DNA of 64,000 nt from Penicillus capitatus (Eukaryota > Plantae > Chlorophyta): NCBI GenBank assembly GCA_965649825.1, contig OZ287707.1:488292-552291 (forward strand), given 5' to 3'. The notes under the pieces were generated by a model that was not told where the DNA came from, did not search any database, and saw nothing but the letters and a program-made list of their open reading frames with translations. The number at the start of each line of letters is the position of its first letter. The first letter of the stretch is position 1. Position numbers and translations under genes: made by a program. This document shows positions 2,625 to 46,416 of this stretch, one piece after another.

Positions 2625-4201
2625 CTCTTGAGAAGGCTTTCTGCAAAGCTACGTCGGCTGGAGTCTCCTCAATGGACAAGGCCGTGGAGTCAAAATGTGA
2701 ACGACAGTGTCTGTAGCGTTGATAACACGAGCATCCGGCCGGTCGACCAGAGTTTCCGTTGTTCTTGGAAGAATGCATTGCACCGAAGAATTTTTGAATC
2801 ATCGTGGAGAATGGCTGCTTTTTCGAGGATGCCTGACAGACGTTGACTCTATTTATTGCCGATGACAGAGCGAACGAACGAATTGTGTCTGGCTCGCCAT
2901 GCAACAGTCGGTGTTTCTTTTTTCATCGCTCTCATGCGAAGTTTCCTGGGATCCAATCTGTGAAACTCCAATCACTTTGTGTTTTGGTGTGTGTACGCTA
3001 TTGTGTTTTCTGAATGCTTAGGGATGTCATCAATCCCCAGTACTGGGAATTTTCAACCTTTTTTTATGAAAACTGAACTCTGTTCGCACTCAGGCTTTCT
3101 GTTAAACTCGTGTTACAGATGAATACTATTGCAGAACTCCATTCCATAGTCTGACTTTCAGCGATGTTATTCGCAAAATTGGTTTGTTAAGTACGAGTTA
3201 TCATTACCACGCAGTTTCCCGTGTATTCTTCCCGAAGGCGCGATAGAAATGTAGATGTGAATGTGGCCGACATGCAATTCAGACCAGTCTTTGATTTGCA
3301 GCAAACGCCAAACAGACAGAAGCATGTATTGTTGAAACCCACAAGTTCAATGTGCAATGCTCTCCATCTATGATGCACATTCAATGCAGAAAGGCTCTGA
3401 AATGCTTGACGTCATCATGCTCTCCTAGGCTCATCGCCGTCTTATGTGCAGAAAAGTGTTCGACTCCTTTAATCTGCTTTCCGCCTGGTTTCGTACAATG
3501 GCCTGTTCAGGAAACAGCGCAATTCTGAAACCTTCCAGTCTTGATGAGACCTCCATCAGAATCCTGAAAGACAGTCCGGTTCAGGAGATCGTACTCCCCA
3601 TACGTCAAGTAAATCGTAAATGAAAGAATCAGTATTTAAAACTCCGCGTTCGGTTAGCGTCACATCAAGGACAACATTCTATTCATGCATACAACGTGGT
3701 ATCCTTCGAACAGGAGCGATCCATACACCAATGGGCTGGATGGACTTCTCTTGTTCCATCAGAAACAGGTTAACGACGTTACATAGATTTTCTCAAACGT
3801 ACAAGTAGAGCAATCCGAGAACCGAGTCTTTGGGACCAGGCGACAGATGTTATGTGCATGAAGCACCTCATCACTAGGACAGGTCTACGTCAATTGACAT
3901 TGGCAAGACAACCGAGTTTAAATGTAATTCAGCAGGAGGTCGTCTGCCGCCAAAGTAGAAAAAAACACAAAGCAACGTCCAGTAACGACGTCTGAACATC
4001 TAAGACCATTTCAGTGTTCTTCAAAGCTCGTCGTTATAGATGAGAACCGTTTGTCTTTACTTGAATAGCACGCTGGAGACGTTTTGCTGCTTGGGTTCTT
4101 TACGAGAGCCGTCACATCAAGCTGTCGCATTTAACCGTCCCGTCCTGTGATTGACGATTCACGTTCTGCATTATTGACGGCTCTTGTGTCGTGGAATCTG
4201 G

Positions 4202-5623
4202 ATGGGTGTCGAAGACGACTGTGTCTGTTCGAGTCCGAAGCTCTTTGTTGGTCAAGTCCCTATCGATGTCGACGAAAACGCTCTCCGGCGTCGTTTTGAA
4301 TCTCTTGGCCACGTTCAGCGCATTGACATGTTGACGCCGCGTCAACTCAATGTTTCCACACGCAGCGCAATGATCTGGTTCGAAACCTGGTCCGACGTCG
4401 AGCGCATCCTCGAGGGTGCGGAAGAGGGTCGACTTGACCTCGGCAGCACGAAACGCCTCGTCATACGCATTGCCGATCCGCCTAAGCGTGCCGATCGTTG
4501 TGTCGGGATCAAGCCTCGAAAGCTCTTCGTCGGACAAGTACGCCTAGAAACGTCGCTGGTTGCCGGCGATACTTCTTCGCGGATGTGTGATAATAGATTC
4601 CGCGTGAGGTTCAGGAGAGTGACGTGGAGAGACTCTTTTCGCAGTTTGGTGCGATCACTGAGTTCGAGATGCCCAAGCGTCTTGCAGGTTGCTTCGCGCG
4701 TTTGCGTCTCATCGATCTGCGTTGTGCGTGATGTTGTAGCTGTTTGCTGTGCGTTCGTTCGGTTTGAGAAATGGCGTCAGGCAGAAGATGCCATTCGCAC
4801 ACTCAACGAGAGATTCCAGTTTCAAGAATCCAAACGACCGCTCGTCGTGAAATTTGCAGATGCCAAAACAGCAGATCCCGTCAGAAGCGCAGCACAAGTC
4901 ATCGGTGAGAAGAGACCATTGACACCAGAAGATCGTGCCGACGTCACCAAGCGACCGTTTTCGCTGCCGTGTGGGGGAGAACAGAGAAAAAGAGATCCAC
5001 TCGAGATGGGATACCTCTCCAGTCGCATGGGGATGCCAATGGGGATGGGGAACCTCATTGGAATGGGCCGACTCGAATGGGTTCAGGAAGAGAGTCACCG
5101 ATTTCTCAAAGTGACAGACACAGATGAATGGGCTTCTTCTTGATGTATGGATGATTCGTGTCAGGATTATGGAAAGGAGACGACAGCAAGTGTGGCGCTG
5201 ATTTCCAATCTGACGACCACGAGTACGTCGTTGCATCTATCGACCGTCAATTTTGGGATGGGTCAGCACGATGGCGTGTCGACGGTGCGAGATTTGAGTG
5301 ATGTGCCCGTCGGGGCCAACGGGAAATTGGGAAAAGGATTCAGTGACCCCAGAGTCAAAGAATGGACATTGTTCATCGGTCAGATACCGCATCAAGCAAA
5401 CGAATATACACTATGGGACATATTCCGTCCCTTTGGCGAAATTCTCGAACTCAATATCCTCAGAAAAGATGGGAAACACAGAGGCTGTGCCTTTGTCACG
5501 TACGAAACAAAAGAAATGAGTCTCGCAGCCATCGAACAGCTCGATGGGACATCTTTCCCTTGGGATGCGAATCAGAGAAAACTTGTCGTCCGTTTTCGTG
5601 AAAAGACAGCAAGAAATGGATGA
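4202..5623 (+). CDS. CELF/Bruno-like RNA-binding protein with 3 RRMs
   Basis: RRM motifs KLFVGQVP, KLFVGQ|IPREV...CAFVRF...RPLVVKFAD and TLFIGQIP...KHRGCAFVTY...KLVVRF. Phase-consistent GT-AG introns near 4538 and 4687, and probably 5111-5164. Confidence 0.85.
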
Positions 5624-5638
5624 CAATGCAAGTGCGAT

Positions 5639-6667
5639 TCAAACCTCCGTTTTGTTTGTCTCTTCTGACTGCTGGACAGTTTCTTCGCTTTCAGGTTTCG
5701 CCGGGGCCTCTGTAGAGATATCTGGTTTCTTGACGAATGCCGCTGCGTAGTTGATGGATGTGTCATCACTCAGTCTCCATTTTTGTGTAATTGGATTCCA
5801 TTGCATTCCTGTCAGCACGTCTAGTTTCAATCCTGCCTGTCGCGCGGCGATGGCCATCTCTCCAGGGGTCAAAAACATTGCCCAGTCGTGTGTTCCTTGA
5901 GGAACCATGTTTAGCACATACTCGGCCATCCAGATCGCACCCACCAAAGACGTCAGTGTACGATTCAGTGTCGTTAGACAAAGCAGTCCATCAGGCTGCA
6001 TTAACTGCGAAAGGGTCTTGACGAAGGCGACCGGATCCTGGACGTGTTCGATCACTTCCGATGCCACAACGACGTCAAATCGAACATCCCTTTGCACCAG
6101 ATCTTCAGCAGCCGTGCATTCGTATCTATAAAAACCGCGATCTCGCCTCGCAAAAGAGTGAGAGAAGTGAAAATAACGTGACGGTTTGAGTGAGAGAAGT
6201 ATCGGACTGCAAATGATGCTGTGCCGCAGCGATGTTCTGTGGAACGACATCGATGCCCAACACCTCGCCTCCCAATCGTCCCAATGCTTCTGTCAGAATC
6301 CCTCCCCCACATCCAACGTCCAGAATCCTTCGGTTCTCCAACGGAAGACGCACAGATGGTGTCGATTGAGAGAAATGCCGAAGCGAAGCATTCCGTATGA
6401 ACATGGTCCGAACAGGGTTCATTTGGTGCAATCCCCAGCACTCTCCTCCTCGATCCCACCAAGAAACTTCTCGAAACTTCGCCACTTCCGACGCCTTGGT
6501 CGAGGCACTCTCGCGAAATCCCCCATTTGAGGCAAACCCCTTTCCCGCTGTCGTTCTTTCCTCGCACAGCACAGCAGTTTCCTATCAGCTTCGTTGACAG
6601 GACCTTACAAGGCAGGCCAGCTTCGCAGTGTCAGACGACTGCAGCTCAAAAGATGTGTCCTGGCCAT
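5639..6667 (-). CDS. COQ3: Ubiquinone biosynthesis O-methyltransferase (COQ3/UbiG), mitochondrial
   Basis: EVAKF...WWD...LHQMNPVR, ILDVGCGGGILTEALGRLG, FDVVVASEVIEHV, TTLNRT, VPQGTHDW. R/S/L-rich N-terminus MARTHLLSCSRLTLRSW. Two introns inferred; start codon inferred. Confidence 0.92.
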
Positions 6668-6702
6668 TATCTGTCGTACATCCGGCAAAGAGGTTCATCA
6701 TC

Positions 6703-7863
6703 ATGGTGCGTGTCGCTCTCTCCACTGCCTCGCCGCGTCTGTCAAGGCCAGTCTTCTCTCGGCGATGCCGACCCTTTCGCGCACGCCGTTTCGCGCGAAG
6801 CACGGCCGTTTCTGAGATACCGTCGTACGATTCGATCGAGCTCGAAGAGGAAGAGAATCTCGATCGCGACGAGTTCCTTCGCGAATTCGATAACCTTCTC
6901 GATGAAACCGAATACGTATTCGAAGTGGGCGAACGCGTCGAAGGGCTGGTGTTTGATGTCGAAGAAGCGGGTGCCTATATCGATTTCGGCGGAAAAGAAG
7001 TAGGATACTGCAACACCAGTGAAATGGGACTACTAAAAGTATCTGACGCCCGACAAGTCTTCGAGCCCAACACTGTACGTATTTTCGACATCGGAGCGAT
7101 TGGGATCGAAAGCGAACGATTGGGTGGAGAAGTCACCCTCCTCTCTCAGAAAGAGGTCGTCAAAGAAATCGCATTCGAGCGTTTGCGACAGATGGGTGAA
7201 TTTCAGACCAAGTTCCAGGTGGATGTCCTGGAGAAGAATGCTGGCGGTTATATGGTGCAGGACGAAATGGGCATGACTGGATTTCTCCCCGGAAAGCAAA
7301 CCGTCGGCAATCCAGCCAGCGATTCTGACGACGAGGACGAGCTCATTGGACAGAGAATTACTGTGAGGATTCTGGACATCTTCGAGGAGTCCGAACGAAT
7401 TCTCGTCTCGCAGCGGGGCATTGCGGGATCTGATGTTGACGAATCCAGATTTGCGATGGGATCTGTTTTGGACGGCGTGGTGGATGGTGTGATGCCCTAC
7501 GGTGTGTTCATCACCGCGGGAGGCATTTCTGGTCTCCTCCATTCGTCACAGATCTCAGGCGCCCATGTAGCCGATGTTGGCTCTGTCTTCAGTGTGAACG
7601 ATCGGGTCAAAGTCATGGTGCTGGGATACGACCGCACTCGCAATCGACTGTCCTTTTCGACGAAAAAATTGGAGCCGACGTCCGGAGACATGCTTAAAGA
7701 TCCAAAGCTTGTGTACGAAAAGGCGGAGGAGATGGCTGCGAAGTTCAAGAAAGAAGTGGAGCTGGCGGCAGCCCGTATTCAAGCGACAGAGTCTGAAACC
7801 ATTGTCTCGGATGTCTCTCTCGACACCTCTCGACTTGAAGGAGGACTTATGTATGAAGACTAA
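6703..7863 (+). CDS. PRPS1: Plastid ribosomal protein bS1c (3 S1 domains), intronless
   Basis: Transit-like N-terminus MVRVALSTASPRLSR. S1 repeats GAYIDFGGK, GFLPG, YGVFITAGGISGLLHSSQIS, RLSFSTKKLEPTSGDM. Confidence 0.9.
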   Translation: MVRVALSTASPRLSRPVFSRRCRPFRARRFARSTAVSEIPSYDSIELEEEENLDRDEFLREFDNLLDETEYVFEVGERVEGLVFDVEEAGAYIDFGGKEVGYCNTSEMGLLKVSDARQVFEPNTVRIFDIGAIGIESERLGGEVTLLSQKEVVKEIAFERLRQMGEFQTKFQVDVLEKNAGGYMVQDEMGMTGFLPGKQTVGNPASDSDDEDELIGQRITVRILDIFEESERILVSQRGIAGSDVDESRFAMGSVLDGVVDGVMPYGVFITAGGISGLLHSSQISGAHVADVGSVFSVNDRVKVMVLGYDRTRNRLSFSTKKLEPTSGDMLKDPKLVYEKAEEMAAKFKKEVELAAARIQATESETIVSDVSLDTSRLEGGLMYED

Positions 7864-11994: not shown

Positions 11995-14900
11995 ATGGGG
12001 AAAAAGATTCGTCCATCGCCGTCGCGCGAAGGCGTTCAGTCACGGAAGCGCCGAAGGCCGTTCGATTCAAAACACGTGTCGATCGAGTTTCTCTGCGATG
12101 GCGTCTCTCTTGAGCGGTGTTTTAGATAAAGGGCCTGGAACCATTGAGCGATATCCCTTTGCCGGCGGATCGCGAGGATTCAGAAATCAATGAGGAGGAG
12201 CTCTCGGAAGAAGACTTTGCGTTTGTCCAGGAGCATTCAGGAAAACTCACGTTCTTGGAGAAGATCGAAAAAGATGAACTGGATCAGTGAGACAGCGAAC
12301 CGACTGTGCAGACTGAGCAGATGTCCTGTTCAGGCAGGTCCTTCATAAACAGAGGACCGAAATGGAGAAGAGACAGCAGAAGATCGAGAGAGTTCAACGA
12401 CGGAAGGCGCAATCAAAAGATCCACACTCCGAAGAAGACACGACAGAATCAGAAGGAGAAATGGATCCGTTGGATCAAGAACATGCAAAGAAGCACATTG
12501 AAGCACCTCAAAAAGTGATCTTATACATAGAGGTCGATCATGTCGACCATATCGTCTCATCTCTCCTGTCCAGAACAAAGCGTCGACGCATGACATCCGC
12601 AACAGATTGCCTGTGAAGACACCAGACGGGCGTGTGGTGCTAGAGCAAGAGATGGATGGCGCTGCTGCAGACTGCGTATGAAAATGGACAGACAGTTCAA
12701 GAGTTCTTGATCTTGTTTGTGCGTTTCAGGCTCGAAAAGTAGAAGGTGTGACAGTGGATGACGTTTTCGTGGAGGGTAAAGCGACTTCACTTGTCATCGA
12801 TCTCTTTGATGCCATCTTGTGTGGCAGGAATTGAAAAGGACGATGAGGAAGCAGATCCAGACGAAGGAGCGCGTGATATGGACAACAGCACCAGAGATCT
12901 TGCCAAATCGGCAGATGCATCTGAATCTGAGCTGTCGGAGATCGAAGTGCGTTAGGTTCCCTCATGTCAGCATTCACGTGTCTTCAGTCTGAGGAAGACC
13001 AGATACCAGATGCCGGAAGGGATGAGCTGAAGACACAGATCGCTGTCCATGCAAACAAGATGTTGTCGCAAGCTGAGAAATCAGTCATCCCATTGAAGAA
13101 ACTTCTGATTCTGTGCAGAAACCGAGATCTCCAGGTCCCATCACCTGTTTTGGACAGAATCGAGCTGGGGATATGAGCATAGATCCAACGACTGGCGATG
13201 GTTTCTGCGATGCAAGTCTTCAAAGACATCATACCGGCGTATCGGATCACCACAAACTTGACAATCGCCCAAGGACAAGCAACGAAGAAGGTGACCGACC
13301 AAGGATACAGAGAGATGTAGATCATCATCCGACGCCTTTTCTGTGCCTTCAGATGGACAGAGAACAGTTGAAGACGAAGGAATACGAATCGTTTCTCCTT
13401 CAATGCTACCAGTCCTTTCTAAAAATGCTGCTCAGCGATGCCGAGTCTTTTCGGAAAGGGCATCGATCTCCTTCGACACAGAGAGTCTGCGTCAAATGTC
13501 TCTGTGGTTTGGCTGAGTCCCTTCATCATTTCAATTATGGGTTCGAGCGTTGCCGACCGCGATTCTTTGGATAAATTGAATAATGGTTGCAGGACGGATC
13601 TTATCAAAGCTGTGGTGAATTACATGAAGCATCCAGATCGAACGCTCACAACAATCTGCTGTTCGACTTTGGCTGAAATCATACGATCGGATGTTCATGG
13701 TCATCGAACACTAGATGTGCGCGCTCCTTGTTATTAGACCCCTGATCTCTTGTGTACCCATGACAGATCGTTCAGTTCGTTGGAGATTTGATAAAACGTC
13801 AGAAGTGCCGTGTCGATCCTCAAGTGGTTGAGTGTCTGTTTCCTGTGTCCTTCAGTGATCTGCCGGTGCCATCAAAGGAAGGTACCTGTGCATTGTTTCT
13901 CTTCCTCGTGTCTCTATTCCATTTCGATCCTGTAGACAGGAAAGAGAAAAAGATATCGAAGCACAGAAGAAGAAAGATGTTCAAGATACGGAACCAGTTG
14001 GAAAAACGCGGAGAGGATTACCAAGTGGACAAACCTCTGCGCGACAAAGCGACGGAAGAGAAAGCACAGCTACAATCGCAAACCGTCGAGGCGCTGTTCG
14101 AGATCTTTTTCAGAGTTCTGAAGCACTGCAGTCATCACGTGCATTCGAGAAGCTGTTACGAACACGAGCACTCTGTCCACAGATATATCGCACTCAAGTG
14201 TCCACTACTGTCTGTTTGTCTGAGGGGACTGGCTAAGTATGCACACATCATGAGTGTCGAGTACTTTGAAGATCTGCTTGCTGTCTGTGCCCTCTCATTG
14301 CCATGACGACCGTTTTGACGACACATGTCTTGTTGCCGCAGGTCATGACGAAACTCCTGAACTGTGCCGCATTGCCGTTCCATGAGAGATTTCAGTGCCT
14401 TTTCACCATCGCCTGTATTTTCCGTGGACAGGGCGAAGCGCTAAACATCGATCGAAAGGCCATGTACCGGCAATTGTACGAAGCCCTCGGTAACTGGAGA
14501 CCAGATGTTGTGCAAGGAAACGATGTCGACAGCAGCAGCAACGGCAGTGACATTGCCACATCGCCTCTCTGTCCATCGGACTCTGAAAGACAGATCCAGA
14601 ATCCAGGCGTGATTCTGATTCGAGTTTGTCACCAGATGTTGTGCGAAACAAAGACATCAGATTTCGGCAAACTGGCTGCGTTTATCAAACGGATGTTGTC
14701 TGTTGCGATTCATCAAGAAACGGGCATTGCCATGGGGATATCTGCCATCGTCCACAAACTGCTCATGAAGTATCGGCGATTGAGAACGCTGATGGAGGGA
14801 GAGAGCGAGACGCCGATCAAAGACGCCATTTACGATCCATCTGTCGCCGATCCCAGCCAGGCTGGAGGATTGCTGACGTCGCTTTGGGAACTGACACTTC

Positions 14901-15322
14901 TGCAGAAGCACTATCACCCTGACACAGCACAGGTCCTCTGTCAGAGATACCATTCCTTCAGTGATGACGGTGTTTTGCAGGGAGCGAAACAGATGTTGAA
15001 AATCCAGCCAGATGCGATGCGCAACGAGGCCGGTTGCATGGCGGCAATACTGACGTCCATCGATGGACCCCCTGGCATTGCAGCGCGCTACACAACAATA
15101 CACGGTAGCTTCTGTCCAGCTCCTTGTCTGAGGAATCGACAGACGGGACTCAAGAAACGCAAGAGACAGAAAACGCCGTCGATCCTTGCCGAGCTCTCGA
15201 ACGGAGAGGGGCGGAGCGCAGATAGCAATGCGATAAGCACCGCCTTCGAGCATTACTTCGCCAGACTGGAAAGACAAAAGCGCAGTCGTCGGTGCGCAAA
15301 GGCAGACGTGCGAAGCAATTGA
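11995..15322 (+). CDS. NOC3: Nucleolar complex protein 3
   Basis: N-terminal EEELSEEDFAFV, LAMVSAMQVFKDIIPAYRI, LHHFNY, CLRGLAKYAHIMSVEYFEDLL, AAFIKRM, LWELTLLQKHYHP. Multi-exon; 3' end approximate. Confidence 0.9.
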
Positions 15323-15609
15323 GTATTCGGAAGAACTCTGGATGATCCTTCTGTTGTGCTTCCGTCTGTACTGTTGCTATCCATTTCGCATTTTACCCGC
15401 CCAAATCCGTCGACGTCCTTCCAAAGGACATTTCTTTCACAACTTCACGGTGAGCAGTCAAGACGGTTGGCCACCCGGTTAACGAGCCGCACTACGCCAT
15501 CTTCACTTGTATCTGCAAACTGATTGTGCTGTTGTAACGCATTGACACTGAGCGAGGCAACAGTCGAGTAGAATCGGGAGACCCCTTGCGTGATTACCTT
15601 TCTGTCAGA

Positions 15610-16241
15610 ATGCTTCGTGCTTTACTGTTCAGTACCGCGACGGCGTTGCTCTGTTATGTGGTCGCTGGAGTGGTCACATTTCCCGTGGAGCGCAACTTAA
15701 CCATCTTTCCGGGCACGACGATGGGCTTTGAATTCAGCGAAGAGAATCTCTTTGAAATGTTTCGCTTTTCGGGTCCAGTGGATTGTGTTTCCTTTAGCTT
15801 CAACAGTACACGTCCAATGAACGCCGCTCTCTTCTTCGAACGCTGGGATTACATCAAAGACTATGTCAACAACCATACCGTCCCGCCCCCAGACAGAGAA
15901 GGCATTGTACCTGGCTCAGAGTGCGCCCCTCTCAAATGGTTGTGTGCTCTTGATGTGACTTTTCATCGCTTTGCAGGTGCAATAAAACAACCGTGTGCAA
16001 GATAGAGTTTACCAAGGGAAATCTGCCGACGCTTAACGCACAACGAGGATTGGGACAGAATGGCTTGCCATACACGGTGGTATTCTGGTACCCCATGAAC
16101 GACACGGAACCGGCCAATGTCAGTCTCACTGTGGATGGACCGTGCTATACTGGAGAAAAAGAGACCTACACCTACACGATCCCTGCTCCTGTAAAGCCCG
16201 TCAACATACCCGGTTCAAATAATCAGACAACGTCGAGTTGA
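15610..16241 (+). CDS. Hypothetical secreted glycoprotein
   Basis: Signal-peptide-like MLRALLFSTATALLCYVVAG. One canonical intron joins CAPLK|WCNKTTVC. At least seven N-x-S/T sequons and several Cys. Confidence 0.75.
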
Positions 16242-16494
16242 GGTCCTCTTAGCGGCAAATGGGTTATCCTGGGTGCGTCATATTTGATGAGAGTCGTCAT
16301 TGTCGTCATTATCGTCGTCGCCTCAATAAATGCATCTCCGGAAATGCGATCGATGCCTTGGCGCATGTGAAAGTGTCGATTTGATTACAGCGATCTCGTT
16401 ATGATATAATCGAGGAGTTGCCAACGCATAACTGTGCGTTTCTGTGATTCTCCCTTTAAAGCTGTTTTGTTCTGGAGGCTGAGATTTGCGTCTC

Positions 16495-19344
16495 ATGCAT
16501 TTTGCTAAGTTTCTCACGCTTTTGGCCGTTGCCTCGATCGTAGGCCCGTTCCTATCCGAGGCGCGAAGTGCGTGTTCCGACTTTTTGCGAATGCGACGGA
16601 TCATTTCCCGCCATTGCAGGCAGTACGAATAGCGACATATCGCATTATTGTAAGAGATCATTGCGAGACAACGACCGCGACGCAGCGCAGCTCTACTGCT
16701 CTGCAAGTAGAGAGGTTTCATTGGTATACGACTCGAGCACGGACGGAAAGGTAATCCATCTATCTCCCTATTCCTCCGACGACACGCATCGCCATTCTCC
16801 TGACGCGCATAACAAATGGCGATGACAACCGCATCCGCTCGCTTCGAATGTATAGGCGCGGGGAAGAACGACGACATACAGATACGGTGTGGCAAATGGC
16901 CGAGAGGCGTTTCGTGGATTTGCATCCCGACAGGACATTGTCGCCACCGGCATCCTCAACGCCGATGCCGACTCCGTTTGGCACGTCATTCGCGATCCGA
17001 GGTGCGATATCGGCATCACAATGTTACCGTTGTCCCACATAAAGCCATGGCAGAGTCGCTTTCTCTGTTGCGTTTCGTGAGTTTGCTTTTGAAGTGCGAC
17101 GAACTGGCCGCTCGATGACGCAGGTGGTGCTTAACAGCGGGGAGGAGCTTCTGTTCTCCCTTCTCCGCATAGACCACGTAAGACACAAACACCGAGAGTG
17201 ACTCCGGAAACGTCATGTCCTAGGCTCGCCGATACCAACAATACTCGATCTTCGGCCACACGAGAAAGATCTTCAACATCGATGATACCTATGTCAACAT
17301 CCGTGGCTCGCAGGTCTTTGTCACAGTGAAAGAAAAAACGGCAACGACGTGCGAGATCGAGATCGGCCTCTCGCTGGCCATCGATCGATCCTCCGAGCGA
17401 AACAGGATTCTATTCTTCTTCGAAGGATTTTTGACCCAGATGGTAAGGTCGATGTCTGATGCCTCGATGTCGGATTTCGGCCGGCGTAGATCGACCACTA
17501 TCGAATGGCTTTTGGAGCGGGCGATTGCACGACACAAGGTCACAGAGAGACAATCGGGATTTGCAACAACTTAGCCCATCCAACATTTGGCGCCGCTCGA
17601 ACTCCCCTCAGGCGTCTTTCGCGTAACGACCCTTCCTACATCGACGGCAAATCCACACCGGCTGACACGAATTTAAGCCCCCGACGTATCAGCAATATTC
17701 TTAGCGACCAAGGTATGAGATTGAGAGAGCGAGCACATCTCACGCACTCTATTGTATTCAGGCACGGACGCAGACGATGCTGAGAACTCGATGCATGTCA
17801 CGGATCTCTTCGTCTTTTTTGGTCAGTTTATCGACCACGATATCGGCATGACGCAAATGGGTTCTTCCTCCCTCGGTAAACAGCCTTTGTTCTCTTTCGG
17901 CCACGATAAATTCAGAGAAGAATTCGACATCCCTATCCCTCGTAACGATCCGGTCTTCCGCGGTCCTCACCGAAAAGACACCCTCGCATTCCAGCGCAGC
18001 ATCTACGTCAAAGTCGACGGTATGGATGTCGAACCGAGAACTCCGCCGAACAGCGCTACGGCCTACCTCGATCTGAGTCAAGCATGACCTTCTTTCTGAA
18101 CCACTCGGCAGTTCGTTGAGAATGTGTGAATTAGGTATACAGTGCGGATCGTGTCAGAGCAAAGGCACTGCGTGCTTACACCGGAGGTCGGATGAAAACG
18201 AGCGGCGGGTATCCGGGTTTCTTGCCGTTCAATGGCGACGGTCCAGGCGGCATCGGACTCAACATCGAAAACGCACCGGATGCCGATTCGAGATTCTACG
18301 TCGCCGGAGACAGCCGAGTGCAAGAGAACGCGTTAATTGCATCTCTCCATGCTTTATGGCTGCGCGAACACAACCACGTGAGCTTCGTCTCATCCCGACG
18401 CCTTTGTCGTCGATCTATCTCTTCAGGTCGCCGCTGAACTGGAAGCCGCGTTTGGCGACGCAGACCTGAACGTGTCGGATGAAGAGCTCTTTCAATACGC
18501 CCGCGATATCTGCGTGGCAGAGTATCAGAGTATCGTCTTCAACGAGTGGCTAACGATCCTTCTCGGAAAAGGCGTCGTCTCTGCTGAAGCCTACGCGTAT
18601 GATCCTGAGCTGTCGAGCAGTCTGGACGTCTTTTTCACCACGGCCTCCTTTCGCTTTGGGCATTCCATGGTCAACAATGTCCTGTGGTTGAAAAACAGCC
18701 GAGGATATGTGTCTAAGAGCAAACTGGAGCAGACCTTCTTCAATCCTTCCGGCGTCAACGCACAGACTTTTGCAGACTATCTGTTCGGTGCTGCAAGCCA
18801 TGAGGCACGGGAGATCGATACCAAAGTCGTCGACAGTCTCCGTTCCCAGCTCTTTAGTGGCGACGGCATTCCCACGCACGACCTCGTTTCGCTCAATATC
18901 CAGCGCGGCAGAGATCACGGTCTGCCATCCTACACCGCCGCGAGAGCGGCTTTTGGTCTACCTCCCCTCTATAGCTGTGACCAGATCAGCAGCTCAGAAG
19001 AGATCCGTAAGAAACTCCGAAAGGCATATTATAATGACATCTCCAAGGTGGATGCCTTTATCGGGGGCCTTGCCGAAGACAAACGAAGAGGAAGTCTTCT
19101 GGGCGATCTCTTTCATCGCAGCATATCCGATCAGTTTCGTCGTCTTAGGGATGGAGATCGCTTCTTCTATAAGAGCTCACCTTTTCCATCAGCTCTTTTT
19201 ACGCTCTATCCCCGACTCCATGACATCGCGAACGATCGTGTGACCTTGGCAGATATCCTGCATCGCAATACCGACATCACCGAGAAGGTGTTGGCTGCAT
19301 ATGGCGATGGTCCCCGTTCGCTATTTCAACTGAAGCATACGTAA
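16495..19344 (+). CDS. Secreted animal-type heme peroxidase (peroxidase-cyclooxygenase superfamily) with N-terminal SRPBCC/START-like domain; 801 aa from 9 exons
   Basis: Signal peptide MHFAKFLTLLAVASIVG. Distal FGQFIDHD, TAYLDLSQVYS, AGDSRVQEN, LWLREHN, proximal FRFGHS, LNIQRGRDHGL, DAFIGGLAE, QFRRLRDGDRFFY. All eight introns close in phase. Confidence 0.9.
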
Positions 19345-19493: not shown

Positions 19494-20164
<671 letters not shown>

Positions 20165-20254: not shown

Positions 20255-23200
20255 ATGTCGCTATCGTCACAAGATAACGGCACGACGTTGGACGATGAAG
20301 TGACAGATGCAGGTCTAAAAGAGTGAGCTAAGAGTGAGAATGCAATGCAGGAATGTCCATTTGAAGTGCAATGGCATCCTTTGGTCGTGGTCCCGTGTTT
20401 TCGTGAGAATGAAGGACGAGAGATTCTGCAGGCAATACAGTCAAAGGATGTGGCACATGTACTCGCGCGTCACGCATGGATGCCGGATGAAGCACCTGAC
20501 GAAACGGCAAATGATCATCTCAATATTGCCTCAGCAGTCATCCAGAAGATCGATGACGCACAGAAGACACTAAAAGAATCCGCATGGAAACATGAGCTCC
20601 AGCAACGACGAGAGAGAATCGAGACAGCCAAGGCGCATCACACTGCTGTCAAAGAACAGATGGAAGGGCAATCAGATCAGGTATGGGATCAAAAGGATCA
20701 ACGTTATGACAAGCGTGCATCGCACAGGACGAAGTCGACTGTATTGAAAAGATGAAGACGGCTGAAGAACAGCTAAGAGAGGCGGAGGGTTCACTGTTGC
20801 ATCCCTTTCGAGAATTCTGTCTGATATGTCTGGAAGAGGCAGATGTCGAGATGGACCTTTTCGTTCAAATGATCTATCACGGTTTTCAAATTGCTGCTGT
20901 CTTTTCTATCGACATCGACGAGGCAGTAGAAGGAGAAGAAAGTGAGTTGTCGGCACCATCCTTTTCTATTAGACATTTCTGCCTGTAGCTACCACGAAGC
21001 TGCCGTCCTTTGCTGACCTAGAGACAAGACTGCAGGAGGGCACACATTTGAGAAGGACGCTCTTTTGTTCTGTCAAGACCTCTTCTGAGGGGGACACTCT
21101 TTTCCAGAGTGTTGTACAACAGCTTCAAAGAATCAAAGAAGCGCACGATGCCTATGATAATTTTCTTCGCAATTCTCGCATCTATTCCTTGCTGGACGTG
21201 GTGGATATCGAAATGCACCGGTATCATTATCTGATGGATCAAGTGCAAGAAGAAGAGAGCACAGCGCCTGTTATCCTGAACGCTATGATAGATCAGGTGT
21301 GTCTTCTTTCTCTGTCTGAAAGCGTATTCCCCTGTAAAGCAGATTTCCTATATGGAAGATTCGATGGATGGAGAGAGAAACGAAGCCTACAGAAATCGAG
21401 CCTCGCAGTTGATCTGTGAAGAAATCGAGGAAACGTGTTGCAGGAACGCCTCTGCCCAACACACGCATTTGCATGATGATCCTCTCCTTGTCCACCATGT
21501 ATTATAACACCATCCGTGCTGCACGATGCTATGGCGTTTTAGGGGAATGCATACAGGATAGCTGAATACGGTCTGTTGACCTCGAACACGTGGTATCCAT
21601 CCACGAAAAGAACAGGGAGTTTCGTGAGTTGGAGGTCCAGATGTCAGTCTTCGAGCGATGCACTTCGTGAACTGGATGATTGCCATGCAGAAGGGCACAT
21701 GTTGCAACTTCTCTATGAGGACATCGTGGGAGGGGACACAGATGCGGTCTGCCCCAATAAGACGCCTCGATGCGATATTATGGAGAAACACGGTGCCGAT
21801 GCCGTACGACAAACGCCTGTCGAATTCGATGCCGTGCTGAGAGAGATCTGGAGCAAACTGCCAAAGGAGCTCCAAAATGAACATGCAGCTCACGTCAAAC
21901 AACGAAAGCACGTCGAGTTTCTCACTCCATCAGTCCTTCATCAAGTTACATCGCAGCATCTGCTGCTCTTCGACACATTCCATGCAGGCACTCGCGAAAC
22001 TGGAAGTATCTGGGATGCAGCGACTCCTTGTTTCGCTGGACGATACGGATACTCGTGCACTGATATACTATCATGACACAAAAGAAAACCAGAGCAGTAG
22101 CGCAACAGGAAACATACAGACGGTTCCTTCCCTGCAGGCTTTCTGGAAACTCAAATGCGAAGATCGACTTGAAGACTTGCAACTTGCAAGACCTTATTAT
22201 GATATGGGTCACCGGCAAGACATCCCTCTATGCAACTGTCGATACGAAATCCTGCCAAACGACATCATCATCAAATCCTCTGCGAAATCGTTTGTCATGA
22301 GCAAGGTAGTGGCATCGCCGATGAGAGTCTGAAAGATGACAGACAGTGTTTGCAGGGAGACTGTTGTTTGTGCTTTAATGGTAGGGGTGGAAAGCACAAC
22401 GGAAGAGTAACCTTAACATATGGCAATAGAGTTGTGATCACTTTGACATTGACAACAGCCAGCGATGGCAGATTACTGCAAGAGGTTGTGTTTGTACGTG
22501 CAGATGGCACGATATTCTCCCTGAACAGCGATGGCCGCCTCAAAATCCAGAAGCCCATCCCGAGAAGCCACTGTTCACATCAACCTGCCGCTAATCTCGT
22601 AAACAAGTCCAGGCGAATCTACCGTTGTGATGTGACATACTGTGAAGGACCCGACTCGGCTGGCAAGCGGATACGAAATCCATCCCAATGGAAACATGAT
22701 CCTCAGTCTCTGTAACGGAATGACGACGGCTTTGACAAGAGAGGGAAACTATTATGAACTGACAGATACAGAGGCAGCTTCCAAGTGGACCGTGAGCTGC
22801 AAAGATGGCAACAAGTATCTTACGCCATCGTGACAAGACCTTTTGCATCTTTCTTGAACAGATTCGTCAGGAAGATGGATTCAGAAAGCCATGAACACAC
22901 AGATTTTCAGATCGACGTCGATGACAAGCGAAGTGAGATGGACGAAGCCTCCGAAGCTTCCTGCAGGGAGAATGGAGATGCAGAAGAGCGTGCGATTTGG
23001 ATGTACCTTCAAACAATACCCACAGTGCAATCTCATTGGCCTCGACAAGACATCAAATGCTTGACCATCCGTGAAGACCTGCTGATGCTTCAGGAATTCC
23101 ATGATGGAACCTACTCGTATACATTGCCGAATGAAACGTGTATCGTGCACAGTGGAGGGAACTGGTCTGTGTCGTTTGAAGAAGCATTACCGTCCATTCA

Positions 23201-25080
23201 GGGCTCTGATAAAGAGATGCAGCTTTCGCCATGCCCAGGCAAGATTTTTCACGAGATCGAGATCATGACGATTCCTTGTTATTCAGGGTTCTCGCTAAAA
23301 TGGATGGGAGTGAGCGGGACAATTTCCGTTGAACTTCCAGAAAGCGAAATCGTGACAGCAAAGGAAGGAATTGTCGTCGCAGACATCTGTCATCACCGTG
23401 CATCATCGGATACCTCCAGAGCGGAAGCCAGACAACAGGTTTTCGATCACCTTTCGGCGCTCAGTAGTCAAGCAGAACAACCGAGACCTGATCTCGAGGC
23501 AGACAACGCTGACGAAAAAGAGATCTCTGTGGAATGTGAGGCACAGCCACTCAGCACAGACACAGATGCAACATCCTTGTCCATTTCCGAAGAGAAAACT
23601 CGACAGAGCATAGGATGGGACTCAGTAGAAGAGCGAGACGTTTCTGTGTTTGGAGATGGATTGGTTGCCTTCGATTTGAAGCGTGGCCGATGCGTTCGGA
23701 TACACGAAGGAGAAGTCTGTCACTATGGCGACGCCTCATCAGATGTCGTCGGCAGCACACATTACGATCCGCAATGGATAAACCTTCAAATCTTTCTGCT
23801 GTTTCCGAATGGACATGCTTTCCGTGTATTGAGTTATAAAGAAGGCCATTCCACTCTGGTGGAGCAGGTGCACTGCCACGGACAGACAAAACTTGAGACA
23901 ACAGATGTTTCTGGCTGGTATATGGACAGCATCTTCTTACCGTTTGGATCGAAACGACACATCCTCCTTTCATCACCGGAGCCGCAATCAGAGAACAAGC
24001 TGGATGCCGAAGATGTGTCATCGGTGGCAATTCCAGATGTCTTACCATCTCTAAAACGCCCTTCTGTCTACAAACTGTCTCCCGATGCTATTCAATCATC
24101 GTTTGTCTTTCCTCGGACTCGTGAAGAGCGCGGCATTCCGGTGATGATCTTCAGAGAAATCATCGAGGCCGTACCCAATCGACAACTCACATCAAAGACG
24201 AATCAATCGCAAGAGGTGCTCTTTATGGGAACATCTCTTTCCACCAATACAGATCCTACAGGACACAGAACTAAAGAAGGAGCCCCTCAGCCGTTTCCAA
24301 GAAAACTTGGAGACGAAGCGAAGGAAGGAAGAAGAAGAGCGGGAGAAACGAAGGCGAGAGGAAGAGAGAAGACAGCAAGAAGCAAAACGACGTGCCTCAA
24401 AGCAAAAGAAGCCATGGCCAGATCGAAAAGACCGCTTTGATAATTGTCCCAAAATACCAACAGCCGAGTCCCTTCTGCCCTTCTTCGCGACCAAGGAAGG
24501 GATTCTGGCGCTGGAGGCCATGGCATCCGAAAAGACCAACGAGAGACCATCTCCGAACAGATGTATCACAAAAGCCAGCTCCGCAGGAAAAGAGCTGATT
24601 CCTGGCGTCTACGTCACATCGAGCGATCCGATGACAGCTGAACCGATCGCCACACACAAGAAGAAGACAGAAAATTTGAAGAAGGCTATGAGCTGCGATG
24701 TTGAGACTATTGGAAAAGACTTTCGCTACTTTGATACATCCAAAGCGCATTCTGGAATGTCTTGCCGAATGAACACACTCGCATTGCATCCTCCACATCT
24801 TCACTTTGGAGCAGTGCCGATCGGGCAGAGCATGTCCAAAAGCTTTATTCTGAGCAACATGTCTACAAAACCGGCTCGATTTCTCATTCATTCCGAGAAC
24901 GCATGTCTCAAGGCGGACCACAAACCGGGTCCACTTCTTCCTGGATTGAGCCGTCGGATCTATGTTACTTTTGAAGCCCAACTGTGTCAACCTTTCGTTG
25001 GCGAACTGACTATTCGTACAGAAGAGAGTTCCTTGCAACTCACGTGCTCCGCAAAGACCGTTAAATGCACTCAAGTGTAA
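20255..25080 (+). CDS. SPAG17: Flagellar central-pair protein PF6/SPAG17-like
   Basis: Large multi-exon gene. Beta-hairpin repeats (FVRADGTIFS, IHPNGNMIL, LLFPNGHAF). C-terminal PapD/ASH-like domain HFGAVPIG...KPGPLLPGL...ELTIRTE. Start codon inferred. Confidence 0.65.
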
Positions 25081-26194: not shown

Positions 26195-26197
26195 CGC

Positions 26198-26277
26198 TGT
26201 CGCGAGTGGGATTCGAACCCACGCCCCGAAGGATGCGGACCTTAACCGCACGCCTTAGACCGCTCGGCCATCGCGAC
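26198..26277 (-). tRNA. trnL-AAG: tRNA-Leu (anticodon AAG), 80 nt, intronless, long variable arm
   Basis: Acceptor GTCGCGA/TCGCGAC+A. D-arm GCCGAGCGGTCTAAGGC. Anticodon stem TGCGG-TTAAGGT-CCGCA. T-arm GTGGG-TTCGAAT-CCCAC. Confidence 0.97.
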
Positions 26278-26457
26278 ATGACAAAAACGTCGATATGGAC
26301 ACGCTATCATTCACCACATCTAATACCGATGGATCATCCTTCCGTCCAGCTCCACGACCACCACGACCTCAATTTACCATGTCAAAAACTGAAAAGATGC
26401 ATCGAGCAATGAAAATCTACAGACAGTAGAGACTCGATGAATACGGCATTGGTGTTG

Positions 26458-29920: not shown

Positions 29921-31882
29921 TTAAAAAGGAAATGCTAAAGACCAAGAGAAGACGTGGGCACGACAGGACTGCCACACTCTTGCATCGCATTGTCGAATTC
30001 GCTGCGGTTTTCTGAGCTCTGCAACGAGACTCAGCATAAAACCATCATCCAGAAATTCAAGATTGTTGAAAGCCCAAATGATATCACAAATGTCTTTGGA
30101 CGTGTAATTTGGCAATCGTTCTGGACGTCGCATTTCGGAAGCGAGTTTCCTCAAAACGTCTGCATCTCGCACACTGACGGTAGCCATTCCTAATACGATC
30201 GTTGAGAAATTATGCTCCATGTACTTCTTCAGTCGGTGGGATTGAACAGCTTCTTTCCCCAGCGTTCTGTAGAAGCTCTCGTCTTGAATGCCAATCAGCG
30301 CGGCACAGGAAATGATGTTTGCCAATTCCTGTACCTTGAATCTTCGCAGTCGCTCACTCTGAACGATTTCTTTCATCAACGCATCCAAGATAGGTGGATA
30401 GGCGAATTCCACGCGTGAGAAGCCGTACAGGATGTTGGCCAGATGTTGAGTTTCCATCTCTAACAGACGTCCCGTTTTCAGAAGGTAGTCTGACAGAGTG
30501 TAAAGCATTCCTTCGTCTTTGACCTGGTTCAGTCCAAATCCATAGATGATGTTCGAGATCTCCTGTCCGGTGAACTTCGTCAAGCGCTGGTAATTGGCAA
30601 TCTCTCGTGCCAGTGCTTGCAGAGCTGCGGGTTCTGGCGCTCTCAGCAATCCACATCCATAAACGATATTTGCTAGCTCCTGCTCCTTGAACCCCGACAG
30701 TCGATTGGTGACGGCAATCTGTTCGCATAGTGCGGTAACGAGTTCAGGTTGTGAGGGAAAGAGAATGGGCGGTGTCTCTTGAATATAGAGCTGAAAGAGA
30801 TCTACCAGACGCATACCCTTCTCCGCCGCAAAGACCAGTAATTGGAAACGGCTGAGGATACCAATAGAGTAGAGCATGATAGAGATGTCACAACCATCCA
30901 TCTGCATGACCAGGCGCTCTTGCAGTATTCGCTGCGACATCTTCTCCATAAAGTCTCGGTGGATATACCTCAATTTGCCGCATGAATAGAAGAGCCGCGC
31001 AAGTTGATTGCTTCGTGCCTCGGACAACAGAGGGATTCCTTTTCGTGCCAAAGAATCCAGGAATGTCTCTGGAGGTCGAGGAAAAATATTTCTCAGTGAG
31101 GTGAAAGCTGAAGCCACGTGACTAAAACGGACTTTGTCTCCCAAGCCGTCGAGAGCTTCTTTGAACTGTGGCCACTTGACAAAGTCGGAAAACTTGATGA
31201 AATCGTCTTTCTGTGGACGCAGCGATGCTGGATCGAACACATCATCGTCCTCCATCGACTCTTCCTGCGTCGTATTCAGCTCCATTATTGGTTCGTTGAT
31301 GTTCTCTTCTTCTACTCCCTCCTCTTCTGGTTTCTCCTCCTCTTCTACTCCCTCCTCTTCTACTCCCTCCTCTTCTACTCCCTCCTCTTCTGGTTTCTCC
31401 TCTTCTTGTACGACAGGCTGTTCTTCGATCGAGGAATGCATGTCGGATGCTGATTCTGCTGCGTTTGTCGTTTCTTCTGTCTCCTTTTCGGACACCTCTG
31501 TAGAGGCGTCTGCGTTGTCAGATGGTTCGGAACTTGTTTGCAGGTCATCTGCTGGACAGGGGACATCTGTCTCTGTCGTATCATTATCGCCTGTCGATAG
31601 CGATAGCCACCGACTCCACCCCTGGGCAGCGTTCCGCGGGAGATTGAACGGTGTCCCTAGTCGGGATCTGCCTTTCCGAGCTGTCTGACAAAGGAATGCG
31701 GTCGGTGTCGCTATGTGAGGGTTGAACGAAGTATGCAGTGCACCGTGGGAAGTTGGACATCTCGATGCGAAGCATCCTAAGCGAAAGAGGTCCGGGTGAT
31801 GACAGACACATGGATGCTGATAGAACGACGGACCACATCTCAGATCGCGCCACAGCGTTGCGACGCGTTGTGTTTGTCGCAT
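29921..31882 (-). CDS. Organelle-targeted helical-repeat RNA-binding protein (OPR/FASTK-like)
   Basis: Transit-like N-terminus and an acidic linker, then tandem 39-aa repeats of the form FKxQELANIxYGxGLL...L..LA.E....RL. The 3' end may extend to 29787 via an intron. Confidence 0.8.
   Translation of the reverse strand: MRQTQRVATLWRDLRCGPSFYQHPCVCHHPDLFRLGCFASRCPTSHGALHTSFNPHIATPTAFLCQTARKGRSRLGTPFNLPRNAAQGWSRWLSLSTGDNDTTETDVPCPADDLQTSSEPSDNADASTEVSEKETEETTNAAESASDMHSSIEEQPVVQEEEKPEEEGVEEEGVEEEGVEEEEKPEEEGVEEENINEPIMELNTTQEESMEDDDVFDPASLRPQKDDFIKFSDFVKWPQFKEALDGLGDKVRFSHVASAFTSLRNIFPRPPETFLDSLARKGIPLLSEARSNQLARLFYSCGKLRYIHRDFMEKMSQRILQERLVMQMDGCDISIMLYSIGILSRFQLLVFAAEKGMRLVDLFQLYIQETPPILFPSQPELVTALCEQIAVTNRLSGFKEQELANIVYGCGLLRAPEPAALQALAREIANYQRLTKFTGQEISNIIYGFGLNQVKDEGMLYTLSDYLLKTGRLLEMETQHLANILYGFSRVEFAYPPILDALMKEIVQSERLRRFKVQELANIISCAALIGIQDESFYRTLGKEAVQSHRLKKYMEHNFSTIVLGMATVSVRDADVLRKLASEMRRPERLPNYTSKDICDIIWAFNNLEFLDDGFMLSLVAELRKPQRIRQCDARVWQSCRAHVFSWSLAFPF
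31305..31406. repeat. Coding tandem repeat (15-nt unit) encoding EEEGV/EEEKP
   Basis: CTACTCCCTCCTCTT repeated on the + strand, plus a duplicated CTGGTTTCTCCTC block. Confidence 0.85.
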
Positions 31883-33488
31883 GTCGTCCGACGGACTCGA
31901 CTCGTAATGAATGATAATGACACCATGTGTTTTTTCTTCTGTGATCACGTTGCGTAGAATTGAATGACAACGAAGGTCAATTGACTTACTGTAACGCATT
32001 TGTTACAAGAGTATGGAGACTTGGAGATTATTGTAAACATGATGCAACGGAAACGAAGCGATAACAGAAACGGATTATTACAGAAAGCTCGAGAATTAAA
32101 AAGCGATCCATCCGTTCTTCTCTAACCCGCGTCTTCCGAAGATTGTGTCTGTGCTTTGCCTCTCTCCCCCTTGTCAATTCTTCTTCGTACAACGAGCCCG
32201 ACTGCGGCGTTTAGAACCGCGGCTCTCAGACTCGTCTTTTGTTTCCATGACCACGTCCCTATCTCCGCAGCGAGGTCCGGTACAAGCGGCCTCCCGCGGC
32301 AAAGTCCGATTCGATGTTTGACAAGAACTTAATGAAGCCACAACCCGTTCGTTTTTTCCGAATCGCTTACTCCTCAGTGTTCGCTAAATAAAGACCTCAA
32401 GAGCATCACAGACACTGCAATCTGAAAGCACGCAAGTCTGTTGCCGTTTGCGACGACCAAAGCGTGACGGAGAGCATGTGCAAAATTGCGTTACTTACAA
32501 ATGGGTCTCTCCCCACCTTCGGTCGGGCGAAAAACTTCCGCTCCATCGGTTAAGCGTTCCGGTGACAATTGTCGGCTGATATATAGAACGGTAATGCACC
32601 GTGCTCGCAACGCGGCCGGATAGTCAGCGTAATGGATACTGTTTGTTTTATCAATGTAAAATTGACAGTTGGACGTTACTTACTGCCTCTTCCACGTGCA
32701 CGAAGAACACTTATGCTTTGCTTTGTCTATCGGTTCTTCGTTCGAATCGTGAAAAACATGGTTCGTCAAAATATCGGCTGCTTGAAAAATGTCAAGGGAC
32801 AGCTGTTAGCTTCGCTGTCGTACTATCTGGACAACTGTCCACTTTCGGGTCACACCAACGTCTGGATACTTAAACGCGTCCCCTGTATGGAACTCTGTCT
32901 CGTTTGTAATCCAATCTGTTCCTTAAAGCTCAGAAACTGAATTGGAAAGAGATTTTTGAACACAACTGGTTCTCATTTGCCAAATTTCTTGAATCCATCT
33001 GTGTTGGTTGGATTCGTGCACCCTGAAAAAACGAAGTTCGCATGGAAACCGAATACTGTATCGCTCCGGGCTGATTTGTTATTCAAAAGCCCGTGTAAAT
33101 CCCACAAACTTCTCTCTCTCGTTCGTAGTCCATCTCTGTGTTTGTGGCATCCTACCTCCACGACATCTCTTGCTGATGAAGCTTGAAACCCTGTTGTTTG
33201 TCGGTTCGGTATATTGGTCGATGTAGATGAATGAATCCTTGTTTCCTTTAGCAGTATTCGTCTATTTCATCCTTCCTGGCATCGTACTATGGCACGTATG
33301 TGAATTGTTACTGATGTTTCAAAGATAGTGCTCAGACGAGTTCTAACCATTTCAGGGTTTTTTTTTTTGCAATGGCCTCCTTGGAAGCACTTTGCTCAAC
33401 ATTCGGTTAACCTAGTCTTTCACGGACTCTTGGGTTCAAACCCGAATTTCGGAAATCTCCTTGGTCATGTGTACATGTGATCGATGCG

Positions 33489-46354: not shown

Positions 46355-46416
46355 CGAACGTACCAACACGAAAACGTGACACCGTTGTCGTCATTTCAGT
46401 TGCACCATTTCATGCA

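Follow-up and report, generated by a model that had tools for sequence, protein, structure and literature searches.

The stretch of DNA analysed here, 64,000 nucleotides (nt) of contig OZ287707.1 of Penicillus capitatus (positions 488,292 to 552,291 of the forward strand; hereafter the window), carries at 16495-19344 on the plus strand a nine-exon gene for a haem peroxidase of the An_peroxidase family (PF03098), in which the catalytic domain is preceded within the same polypeptide chain by a signal-peptide-like leader, a variable linker and a further domain that very probably adopts the SRPBCC/helix-grip fold. The architecture is new while its parts are known, and the N-terminal domain (N-domain) constitutes a divergent family of this predicted fold, conserved across one algal order, the Bryopsidales. 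The original prediction, made from the sequence alone, named no earlier account of such a combination; full-text literature searches likewise returned no description of an SRPBCC-peroxidase fusion or of these algal proteins, which are deposited as 'hypothetical protein' or without a name and with PF03098 as the sole recognised domain.

The coding sequence of 2397 nt begins with the ATG at 16495, ends with the stop codon at 19344 and is translated in one in-phase reading frame into 798 amino acids (aa). Its exons, together with the single intron of unusual boundaries, are arranged as follows:

16495-16567, plus strand: exon 1, residues 1-24, the ATG and a signal-peptide-like segment
16620-16750, plus strand: exon 2, residues 25-68, non-conserved linker with Cys35 and Cys51
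16856-17001, plus strand: exon 3, residues 69-116, end of the linker, then β1 and α1 of the N-domain
17054-17177, plus strand: exon 4, residues 117-158, α2 and β2-β4 of the N-domain
17224-17442, plus strand: exon 5, residues 159-231, β5-β7 and the first half of the long C-terminal helix
17490-17712, plus strand: exon 6, residues 232-305, second half of the helix, the Cys244-Cys256 loop and the start of An_peroxidase
17762-18081, plus strand: exon 7, distal haem pocket GQFIDHD and the Ca-site motif TAYLDLSQ
18082-18134, plus strand: intron 7, GC-AG boundary (GCATGA...TTAG), donor at 18082
18135-18377, plus strand: exon 8, RVQEN with the catalytic Arg and the haem-ester Glu
18427-19344, plus strand: exon 9, proximal His (FRFGHS), Asn650 (LNIQRGRDHG), C-terminus and stop

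The start, the stop and the in-phase joins of the five short 5′ exons to four more exons, as originally proposed, were all reproduced, and every peptide quoted at that time is found in the spliced protein. Between two of these, 'VIRDP' and 'VVLNSG', lie 23 further residues (RVAFSVAFREFAFEVRRTGRSMTQ), which originate from exon 4, align with all relatives and belong to the better-conserved segments of this domain. The eight introns measure 52, 105, 52, 46, 47, 49, 53 and 49 nt in order; seven are of the GT-AG type, intron 7 being the GC-AG one, and retention of any single intron in the transcript leads to a premature stop codon. Such lengths of about 50 nt are not confined to the peroxidase gene in the window, since the neighbouring two-exon gene for a ubiquitin-conjugating enzyme E2 (19608-20164, minus strand, convergent with the peroxidase gene; UQ_con, E = 2e-26) contains a GT-AG intron of 53 nt (19800-19852), which falls into the size class of the peroxidase introns.

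In tblastn searches with Caulerpa, Ostreobium and Bryopsis proteins exons 3 and 5-9 were recovered, exon 3 by a high-scoring segment pair (HSP) to the Caulerpa protein, and HSP ends were located at or a few bases from the junctions 18081/18135 and 18377/18427. At intron 7 the HSPs of all three relatives stop at 18081, of which two restart at 18135 while the third reads through. GT donors near the end of exon 7, each tried by hand with two acceptors, break either the frame or the conserved LDLSQ|VYSADRVRAKALR motif. As no GT donor keeps both the frame and the conserved LDLSQ|VYSADRV, the GC donor was accepted. For exon 4 the acceptor CAG|A at 17054 brings the reading frame back, the encoded peptide RVAFSVAFREFAFEV... 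aligns with RALSIAYRQFAYDV... of Caulerpa, and the preceding intron occupies the same position as in the Bryopsis gene BSKO_01944. The weakest-supported exon is exon 2 (phase 1 in, phase 0 out), which was placed by splice-site and frame logic only, is not alignable to relatives and has a predicted local distance difference test (pLDDT) score below 50. Two antisense open reading frames (ORFs) at 16323-16925 and 18550-18918 gave no significant family match and were taken as chance ORFs.

That the gene model and the fusion hold can be stated with little reservation. The junction between exons 5 and 6 follows M231 and is situated inside the last helix of the N-domain (residues 214-239), and exon 6 runs without a stop codon from this helix through G-A-G-D-C244...C256-N-N into the peroxidase domain. 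An N-terminal disulphide loop in front of a CNN motif is also present in MPO. Two contigs of relatives from Logan, L001 (2618 nt) and L002 (2764 nt), contain one ORF each, of 749 and 758 aa, which comprises signal peptide, N-domain and peroxidase, is flanked by untranslated sequence and is intron-free; since the genomic copy of a close homologue in Bryopsis is split into about 10 exons over 4.3 kb, these contigs are most simply spliced mRNAs. Furthermore, three intron positions within the N-domain coincide with those of BSKO_01944 to within one codon, namely behind a conserved D/E-P, at DH/SR before β5 and, within the C-terminal helix, following the Met, and the Bryopsis gene models are supported by RNA-seq. 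The full-length AlphaFold2 (AF2) model has a predicted template modelling score (pTM) of 0.80 over 798 residues, about 130 of which show pLDDT values below 50, whereas simple arithmetic on the model bounds the pTM at approximately 0.66 for the case that the 145-residue N-domain were not confidently placed. The helix ends only four residues before Cys244, and this short linker together with the pTM of 0.80 suggests a fixed inter-domain geometry, with both domains forming one rigid body.

An artefact of gene prediction, in which two genes or chance ORFs had been force-spliced, might be suspected from the missing homology support for exons 1 and 2 and from the GC donor required by one intron, but can be regarded as effectively refuted. 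Exon 6 carries coding sequence for both domains within a single frame, every intron would bring in a stop codon if kept, the architecture and three intron positions are common to relatives with RNA-seq-informed models, and relatives also provide intron-free contigs with the protein in a single ORF. Exon 3, which lacks a Met and is immediately preceded by an in-frame stop, cannot start a protein and needs an upstream exon. Nor do the 5′ exons represent a separate transcript, a possibility that the original prediction had named as fatal to the fusion, given that exon 6 spans both domains and the relatives share the layout.

Residues 1-24 open with a brief polar stretch, followed by a hydrophobic core of 15 residues (FLTLLAVASIVGPFL) and then SEA|RS, with MHFAKFLTLLAVASIVGPFLSEA|RS as the putative cleavage context, and all full-length relatives begin with similar hydrophobic leaders. 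The subsequent residues 25-93 are not conserved, exhibit pLDDT values below 50 and are predicted to be disordered. They cannot be aligned to the relatives, in which the linker is Pro/Gly/Arg-rich, or a low-complexity repeat, or extended by PAN/Apple modules. Of the signal peptide and the short Cys-containing segment initially assigned to the N-terminus, the former is retained as a hydrophobic, signal-peptide-like leader, while the latter (Cys35, Cys51) is present but non-conserved and predicted to be disordered.

The catalytic part of the protein is defined by the following elements:

17544-19290, plus strand: An_peroxidase domain (PF03098), residues 250-781, split by introns 6-8
17833-17835, plus strand: D330, haem-ester Asp
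17836-17838, plus strand: H331, distal His
18315-18317, plus strand: R473, catalytic Arg
18324-18326, plus strand: E476, haem-ester Glu
18661-18663, plus strand: H572, proximal His
18895-18897, plus strand: N650, Asn partner of the proximal His

The PF03098 match (E = 5e-127, 425.1 bits versus a cut-off of 25) covers profile positions 2-525 of 530. The distal motif G-Q327-F-I-D330-H331-D332 (GQFIDHD, residues 326-332) as well as the R-x-x-E and proximal His elements are all in place, so that the distal D-H, the catalytic Arg, the proximal His and the ester-forming Asp and Glu originally listed can be assigned to D330/H331/R473/E476/H572. These five residues and Q327 are invariant in 15 algal, bacterial and animal homologues, N650 being nearly so, and the catalytic residues find their counterparts in the alignment with 8S6C and DdPoxA (6ERC), which are the closest solved structures by sequence and by predicted fold, followed by MPO, LPO, DUOX and EPO. 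An insert of about 20 residues (~337-357, at ~17854-17916), absent from 8S6C, follows the distal His motif (…GSSSLGKQPLFSFGHDKF…); it harbors the motif QPLFS, which is conserved within the Bryopsidales clade, and has pLDDT values below 50.

In this superfamily the Asp and the Glu form two autocatalytic haem ester bonds (PMC5787809). The two-ester enzymes EPO, LspPOX and peroxidasin oxidise bromide, whereas DdPoxA, with Ile instead of the ester Asp and a single bond, hardly does so, and chloride is oxidised only by MPO with its extra Met sulfonium link (PMC5787809). In the window protein E476 is followed by Asn (R473-V-Q-E476-N); with the Met of the MPO sulfonium link missing, oxidation of chloride is not expected. 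The two ester residues and the Asn after E476 rather predict an LPO-like oxidation of I−, SCN− and probably Br−. Judged from its residues, the protein is likely to be a secreted and active peroxidase with two haem ester bonds.

The second building block lies upstream of the peroxidase:

16931-17516, plus strand: predicted SRPBCC/helix-grip domain, residues ~94-240, split by introns 3-5

AF2 predicts for this N-domain a β-α-α-β6-α topology that closes with a 26-residue C-terminal helix (mean pLDDT 82.4, pTM 0.77, core above 90), and a separate AF2 run on the full-length protein gave the same elements at residues 96-239. The helix-grip fold is characterised by an antiparallel β-sheet that encloses a long helix at the C-terminus. 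A Foldseek comparison of the N-domain model with the PDB yielded 324 matches at E ≤ 0.001, and all 50 of the 50 matches listed are of SRPBCC/Bet v 1/PYL/START type, with a best E-value of 2.5e-8 and template modelling (TM) scores on the target of up to 0.80. The best E-value belongs to Bacillus XoxI (3CNW; TM 0.79 on the target). The others listed comprise structural-genomics proteins of the Polyketide_cyc2 type, PYL abscisic-acid receptors, norcoclaurine and thebaine synthases, PR-10/Bet v 1 and cytokinin-binding proteins, and the mycobacterial START protein 5Z8O, a member of the START superfamily. Taken together, the models make it highly probable that residues ~94-240 possess a helix-grip fold.

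The complete layout, consisting of signal peptide, variable linker, N-domain of about 150 aa and An_peroxidase, is shared by proteins of three genera of the Bryopsidales, namely Caulerpa, Bryopsis and Ostreobium. The window protein itself is absent from the protein collections searched; its best match there is g890.t1 of Caulerpa lentillifera (EukProt EP00210_P000920) with 56% identity overall; the relatives in the order, at 40-56% overall, further include evm.model.scf_1104EXC.2 and CAD7704198.1 of Ostreobium quekettii and at least five proteins of Bryopsis sp. KO-2023 (BSKO_01944, BSKO_10770, BSKO_06739, BSKO_07164 and BSKO_04350). The Caulerpa genome paper describes this alga as richer in peroxidase genes than other algae (PMC6476727). 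G+C content amounts to about 50% in the window versus 40.4% in C. lentillifera.

A HMMER search with the N-terminal part against 1.84 billion representative proteins returned six matches, five of which were kept: the two named Bryopsis and Ostreobium proteins and three Logan contigs, all with N-domain plus An_peroxidase or fragments of such genes, the shortest ending within the N-domain. The sixth, P0033 (1321 aa, matched in 13 stretches), was discarded as a tandem repeat of low complexity. Among these 1.84 billion proteins the N-domain was seen neither alone nor in another architecture. The N-terminal 256 aa alone gave no match in a word-index search, the relatives surfacing only with the full-length query, and a search with the N-domain profile contributed nothing beyond exon-sized pieces of genomic Logan contigs. 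Homologues outside the order (planctomycete and other bacteria, Chondrus, ticks) cover the catalytic two-thirds of the query only. Within the order the N-domains share 22-46% identity while the preceding linker is unalignable, which argues for selective retention of the N-domain. In one subgroup, represented by BSKO_06739 (L004 10001-14161), P0034, P0031 and P0035, Cys-rich PAN/Apple modules precede the helix-grip and peroxidase domains and point to an extracellular setting of the family.

A possible mode of action can be outlined from these parts. The signal peptide would direct the 798-aa protein into the endoplasmic reticulum, and the mature chain would present a disordered, variable linker of about 70 residues, then the predicted helix-grip domain and, rigidly joined to it, the peroxidase. 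There, H572 backed by N650 and the distal Q327, H331 and R473 would supply LPO-type chemistry, with D330 and E476 placed for two autocatalytic haem ester bonds; H2O2 would convert the haem to compound I, which in turn would oxidise a halide from seawater or a phenolic donor. The helix-grip pocket may hold a small hydrophobic acceptor or substrate, e.g. a terpenoid or phenolic compound, so that oxidation, halogenation or coupling would be aimed at the pocket-bound molecule in the service of wall or wound-plug chemistry or of defence. With receptors, carriers and enzymes among the listed structural matches, holding a small hydrophobic molecule next to the oxidant site appears to be the most likely role of the N-domain. 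The actual coupling of such a molecule to the peroxidase reaction, read from models, is put forward tentatively and is somewhat doubtful, while the chances of the whole explanation, from the architecture to the functional step, are evenly balanced.

Several observations weigh against this explanation. The signal peptide was called by eye and from hydropathy only. The N-domain model was built on an alignment of only 10 sequences, Pfam yielded nothing at E ≤ 10 for the N-domain of the window protein or of any of the 10 family members, and no PDB chain matches the N-domain by phmmer or by profile. Peptidase_M61_N and OMP-decarboxylase matches to the N-domain, at E-values of 0.1-0.9, are noise, and hhalign of the family profile against Arabidopsis PYR1 resulted in a probability of 0.2, which is uninformative either way. 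Of the SRPBCC assignment made in the original prediction, the fold is supported as a prediction by AF2 and Foldseek, the structure search that could have refuted it having pointed to the helix grip, whereas the anticipated sequence match to Polyketide_cyc2 or another SRPBCC family failed to appear; by sequence, the N-domain could be placed in none of the described families. It also evolves faster than the peroxidase domain (22-46% versus 46-59% identity). In addition, an alignment of 13 members reveals that the window copy deviates at three near-invariant sites, with Q94 in place of W, Q163 in place of H and R213 in place of P:

16931-16933, plus strand: replaced codon, Q94, versus 12 relatives; site before β1
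17236-17238, plus strand: replaced codon, Q163, versus 12 relatives; site on β5
17386-17388, plus strand: replaced codon, R213, versus 12 relatives; site before the last helix

The closest relative, from Caulerpa, keeps the W, H and P, and their loss suggests that the N-domain of the window copy may be relaxed or shifted in function. Finally, a gene for an H2O2-producing or biosynthetic partner was found nearby neither here nor at two Bryopsis loci.

Some of these features are shared by a different explanation, according to which the N-domain is a structural or regulatory appendage, i.e. a chaperone, a cap for folding, haem maturation or secretion, or a channel gate, loosely resembling the propeptide of promyeloperoxidase. 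The rigid four-residue linker and the high inter-domain confidence would suit such a role, as would the fast divergence of the N-domain and the tolerated loss of the conserved W, H and P in the window copy. However, all 50 listed structural neighbours are of SRPBCC type, many of them solved as ligand complexes or as enzymes; 8S6C and DdPoxA fold as stand-alone domains, DdPoxA being secreted without such a domain (PMC5787809); and the proMPO structure 5MFA aligns over the catalytic domain only. An appendage of this kind is rather unlikely.

The N-domain could alternatively act as a START-like lipid or surface module that localises the peroxidase to a membrane, lipid body, wall or wound plug. 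The occurrence of the START-superfamily protein 5Z8O among the listed Foldseek matches is in line with this, and the PAN/Apple modules of adhesion type that some paralogues add upstream suggest that anchoring matters for this peroxidase family. Likewise, siphonous algae seal wounds with rapidly cross-linked plugs, for which PMC6278426 gives background. The best matches, however, are small-molecule SRPBCC proteins (XoxI, PYL, PR-10 and norcoclaurine synthase) and not lipid-transfer START proteins, and localisation by the N-domain is judged unlikely.

A catalytic N-domain, working as a cyclase, isomerase or coupling scaffold on a reactive intermediate that the peroxidase had produced (a radical, quinone or bromonium adduct), would make the protein a two-step enzyme on one chain and would agree with norcoclaurine and thebaine synthases being close structural matches and with a His, a Ser and a Trp that are near-invariant across the N-domains of the family. 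In the window copy, though, both the His and the Trp are replaced by Gln, and no known SRPBCC enzyme motif could be aligned, which leaves catalysis by the N-domain itself very improbable.

Whichever role applies, the family represents a lineage-restricted group of predicted SRPBCC fold that sequence profiles miss, and adds a new architecture to the peroxidase-cyclooxygenase superfamily. Its members are candidate enzymes for targeted oxidation or halogenation in giant single-celled seaweeds, which rely on fast wound sealing and chemical defence. Should the pocket steer the reaction, the enzymes would be of interest for biocatalysis; should it not, the gain lies in the annotation of about ten 'hypothetical proteins'.

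With regard to the genomic surroundings, no functional gene cluster including the peroxidase is apparent, the neighbours in the window and at the two Bryopsis loci being unrelated housekeeping genes. Just upstream of the peroxidase gene two ORFs in different frames of the plus strand (15586-16005 and 15993-16241), with a hydrophobic N-terminus and several N-x-S/T sites, could be joined by a very short intron or a frameshift; neither has a Pfam match. Four ORFs of 411-692 aa have no Pfam match at E ≤ 0.001 (29921-31999, minus strand; 48720-50669, 22785-24440 and 51303-52538, plus strand). The remaining features are:

4184-5143: housekeeping ORF, RRM
6628-7863: housekeeping ORF, S1 RNA-binding
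14303-15322: housekeeping ORF, CBF/Mak21
26196-26278, minus strand: tRNA-Leu(AAG), the only tRNA found in the window
44513-46369, minus strand: housekeeping ORF, CLPTM1
53544-54554: housekeeping ORF, Spatacsin C-terminus
60952-61914, minus strand: housekeeping ORF, DUF1295/steroid-reductase-like

For the catalytic domain the best match is 8S6C from Cyanobacterium TDX16 (E = 5e-81, 32% identity), followed by Dictyostelium DdPoxA (6ERC; E = 3e-58, 28% identity), and in the ranking of PDB matches by sequence and fold these two stand well ahead of the family 1 enzymes. Both share with the window peroxidase the distal Q, H and R, the proximal H and N and the Glu ester residue. 8S6C retains the ester Asp as well (GQFLDHD) but lacks a Cys-Cys loop at the start of the domain, while DdPoxA carries Ile at the position of the Asp. 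With 523 and 511 residues, respectively, they are single-domain proteins that have no helix-grip N-domain. DdPoxA has been placed in 'family 6' of the peroxidase-cyclooxygenase superfamily together with a bacterial enzyme, taken here to be LspPOX of Lyngbya, for which two ester bonds have been reported (PMC5787809). The mammalian enzymes LPO, MPO and EPO agree with the window peroxidase in fold (Foldseek E of approximately 1e-27, 26% identity), in the Asp and Glu that form the ester bonds and in the catalytic residues; they lack the helix-grip domain, just as the window protein lacks a propeptide of the MPO type.

For the N-domain, the SRPBCC superfamily (XoxI, PYR/PYL, PR-10/Bet v 1, norcoclaurine synthase and START) offers the same topology, with TM scores on the target of 0.5-0.8 over about 145-165 aligned columns at only 7-17% identity, and no match by hidden Markov model or profile. 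The matched chains comprise about 137-190 residues, and none was noted to be fused to a haem peroxidase. The fusions known in the peroxidase-cyclooxygenase superfamily add adhesion, calcium-binding, NADPH-oxidase or P450 modules instead of pocket domains for small molecules.

From Penicillus capitatus itself a haem bromoperoxidase was purified in 1981 by Manthey and Hager, as cited in PMC6864650. The present peroxidase family is a candidate for this enzyme, which is meant as a lead only and not as a result. No sequence is known to be available for it, and its subunit is probably smaller than the ~86 kDa expected here; Penicillus is a member of the same algal order as the relatives of the window protein. 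A helix-grip pocket might give a haem haloperoxidase or peroxidase regio- or stereo-control over a hydrophobic algal metabolite in place of a mere release of free hypohalous acid or radicals, as a fused, 'dirigent-like' arrangement peculiar to siphonous green algae, and the proteins might be the gene family responsible for the haem bromoperoxidase activity of Penicillus and related Bryopsidales; this combined proposal is decidedly unlikely. The vanadium bromo- and iodoperoxidases found in red and brown algae share neither fold nor cofactor with this family, although their chemistry, the H2O2-dependent oxidation of halides, is expected to be alike.

According to the general view, peroxidases of the MPO/LPO type give off diffusible oxidants and exert little control over the substrate. 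A working analogy for an arrangement in which a pocket would direct the outcome of such a reaction is provided by dirigent proteins together with laccases or peroxidases, where a pocket protein steers intermediates made by an oxidase; the dirigent proteins are separate polypeptides of β-barrel fold, whereas the predicted helix-grip domain described here is part of the peroxidase chain.

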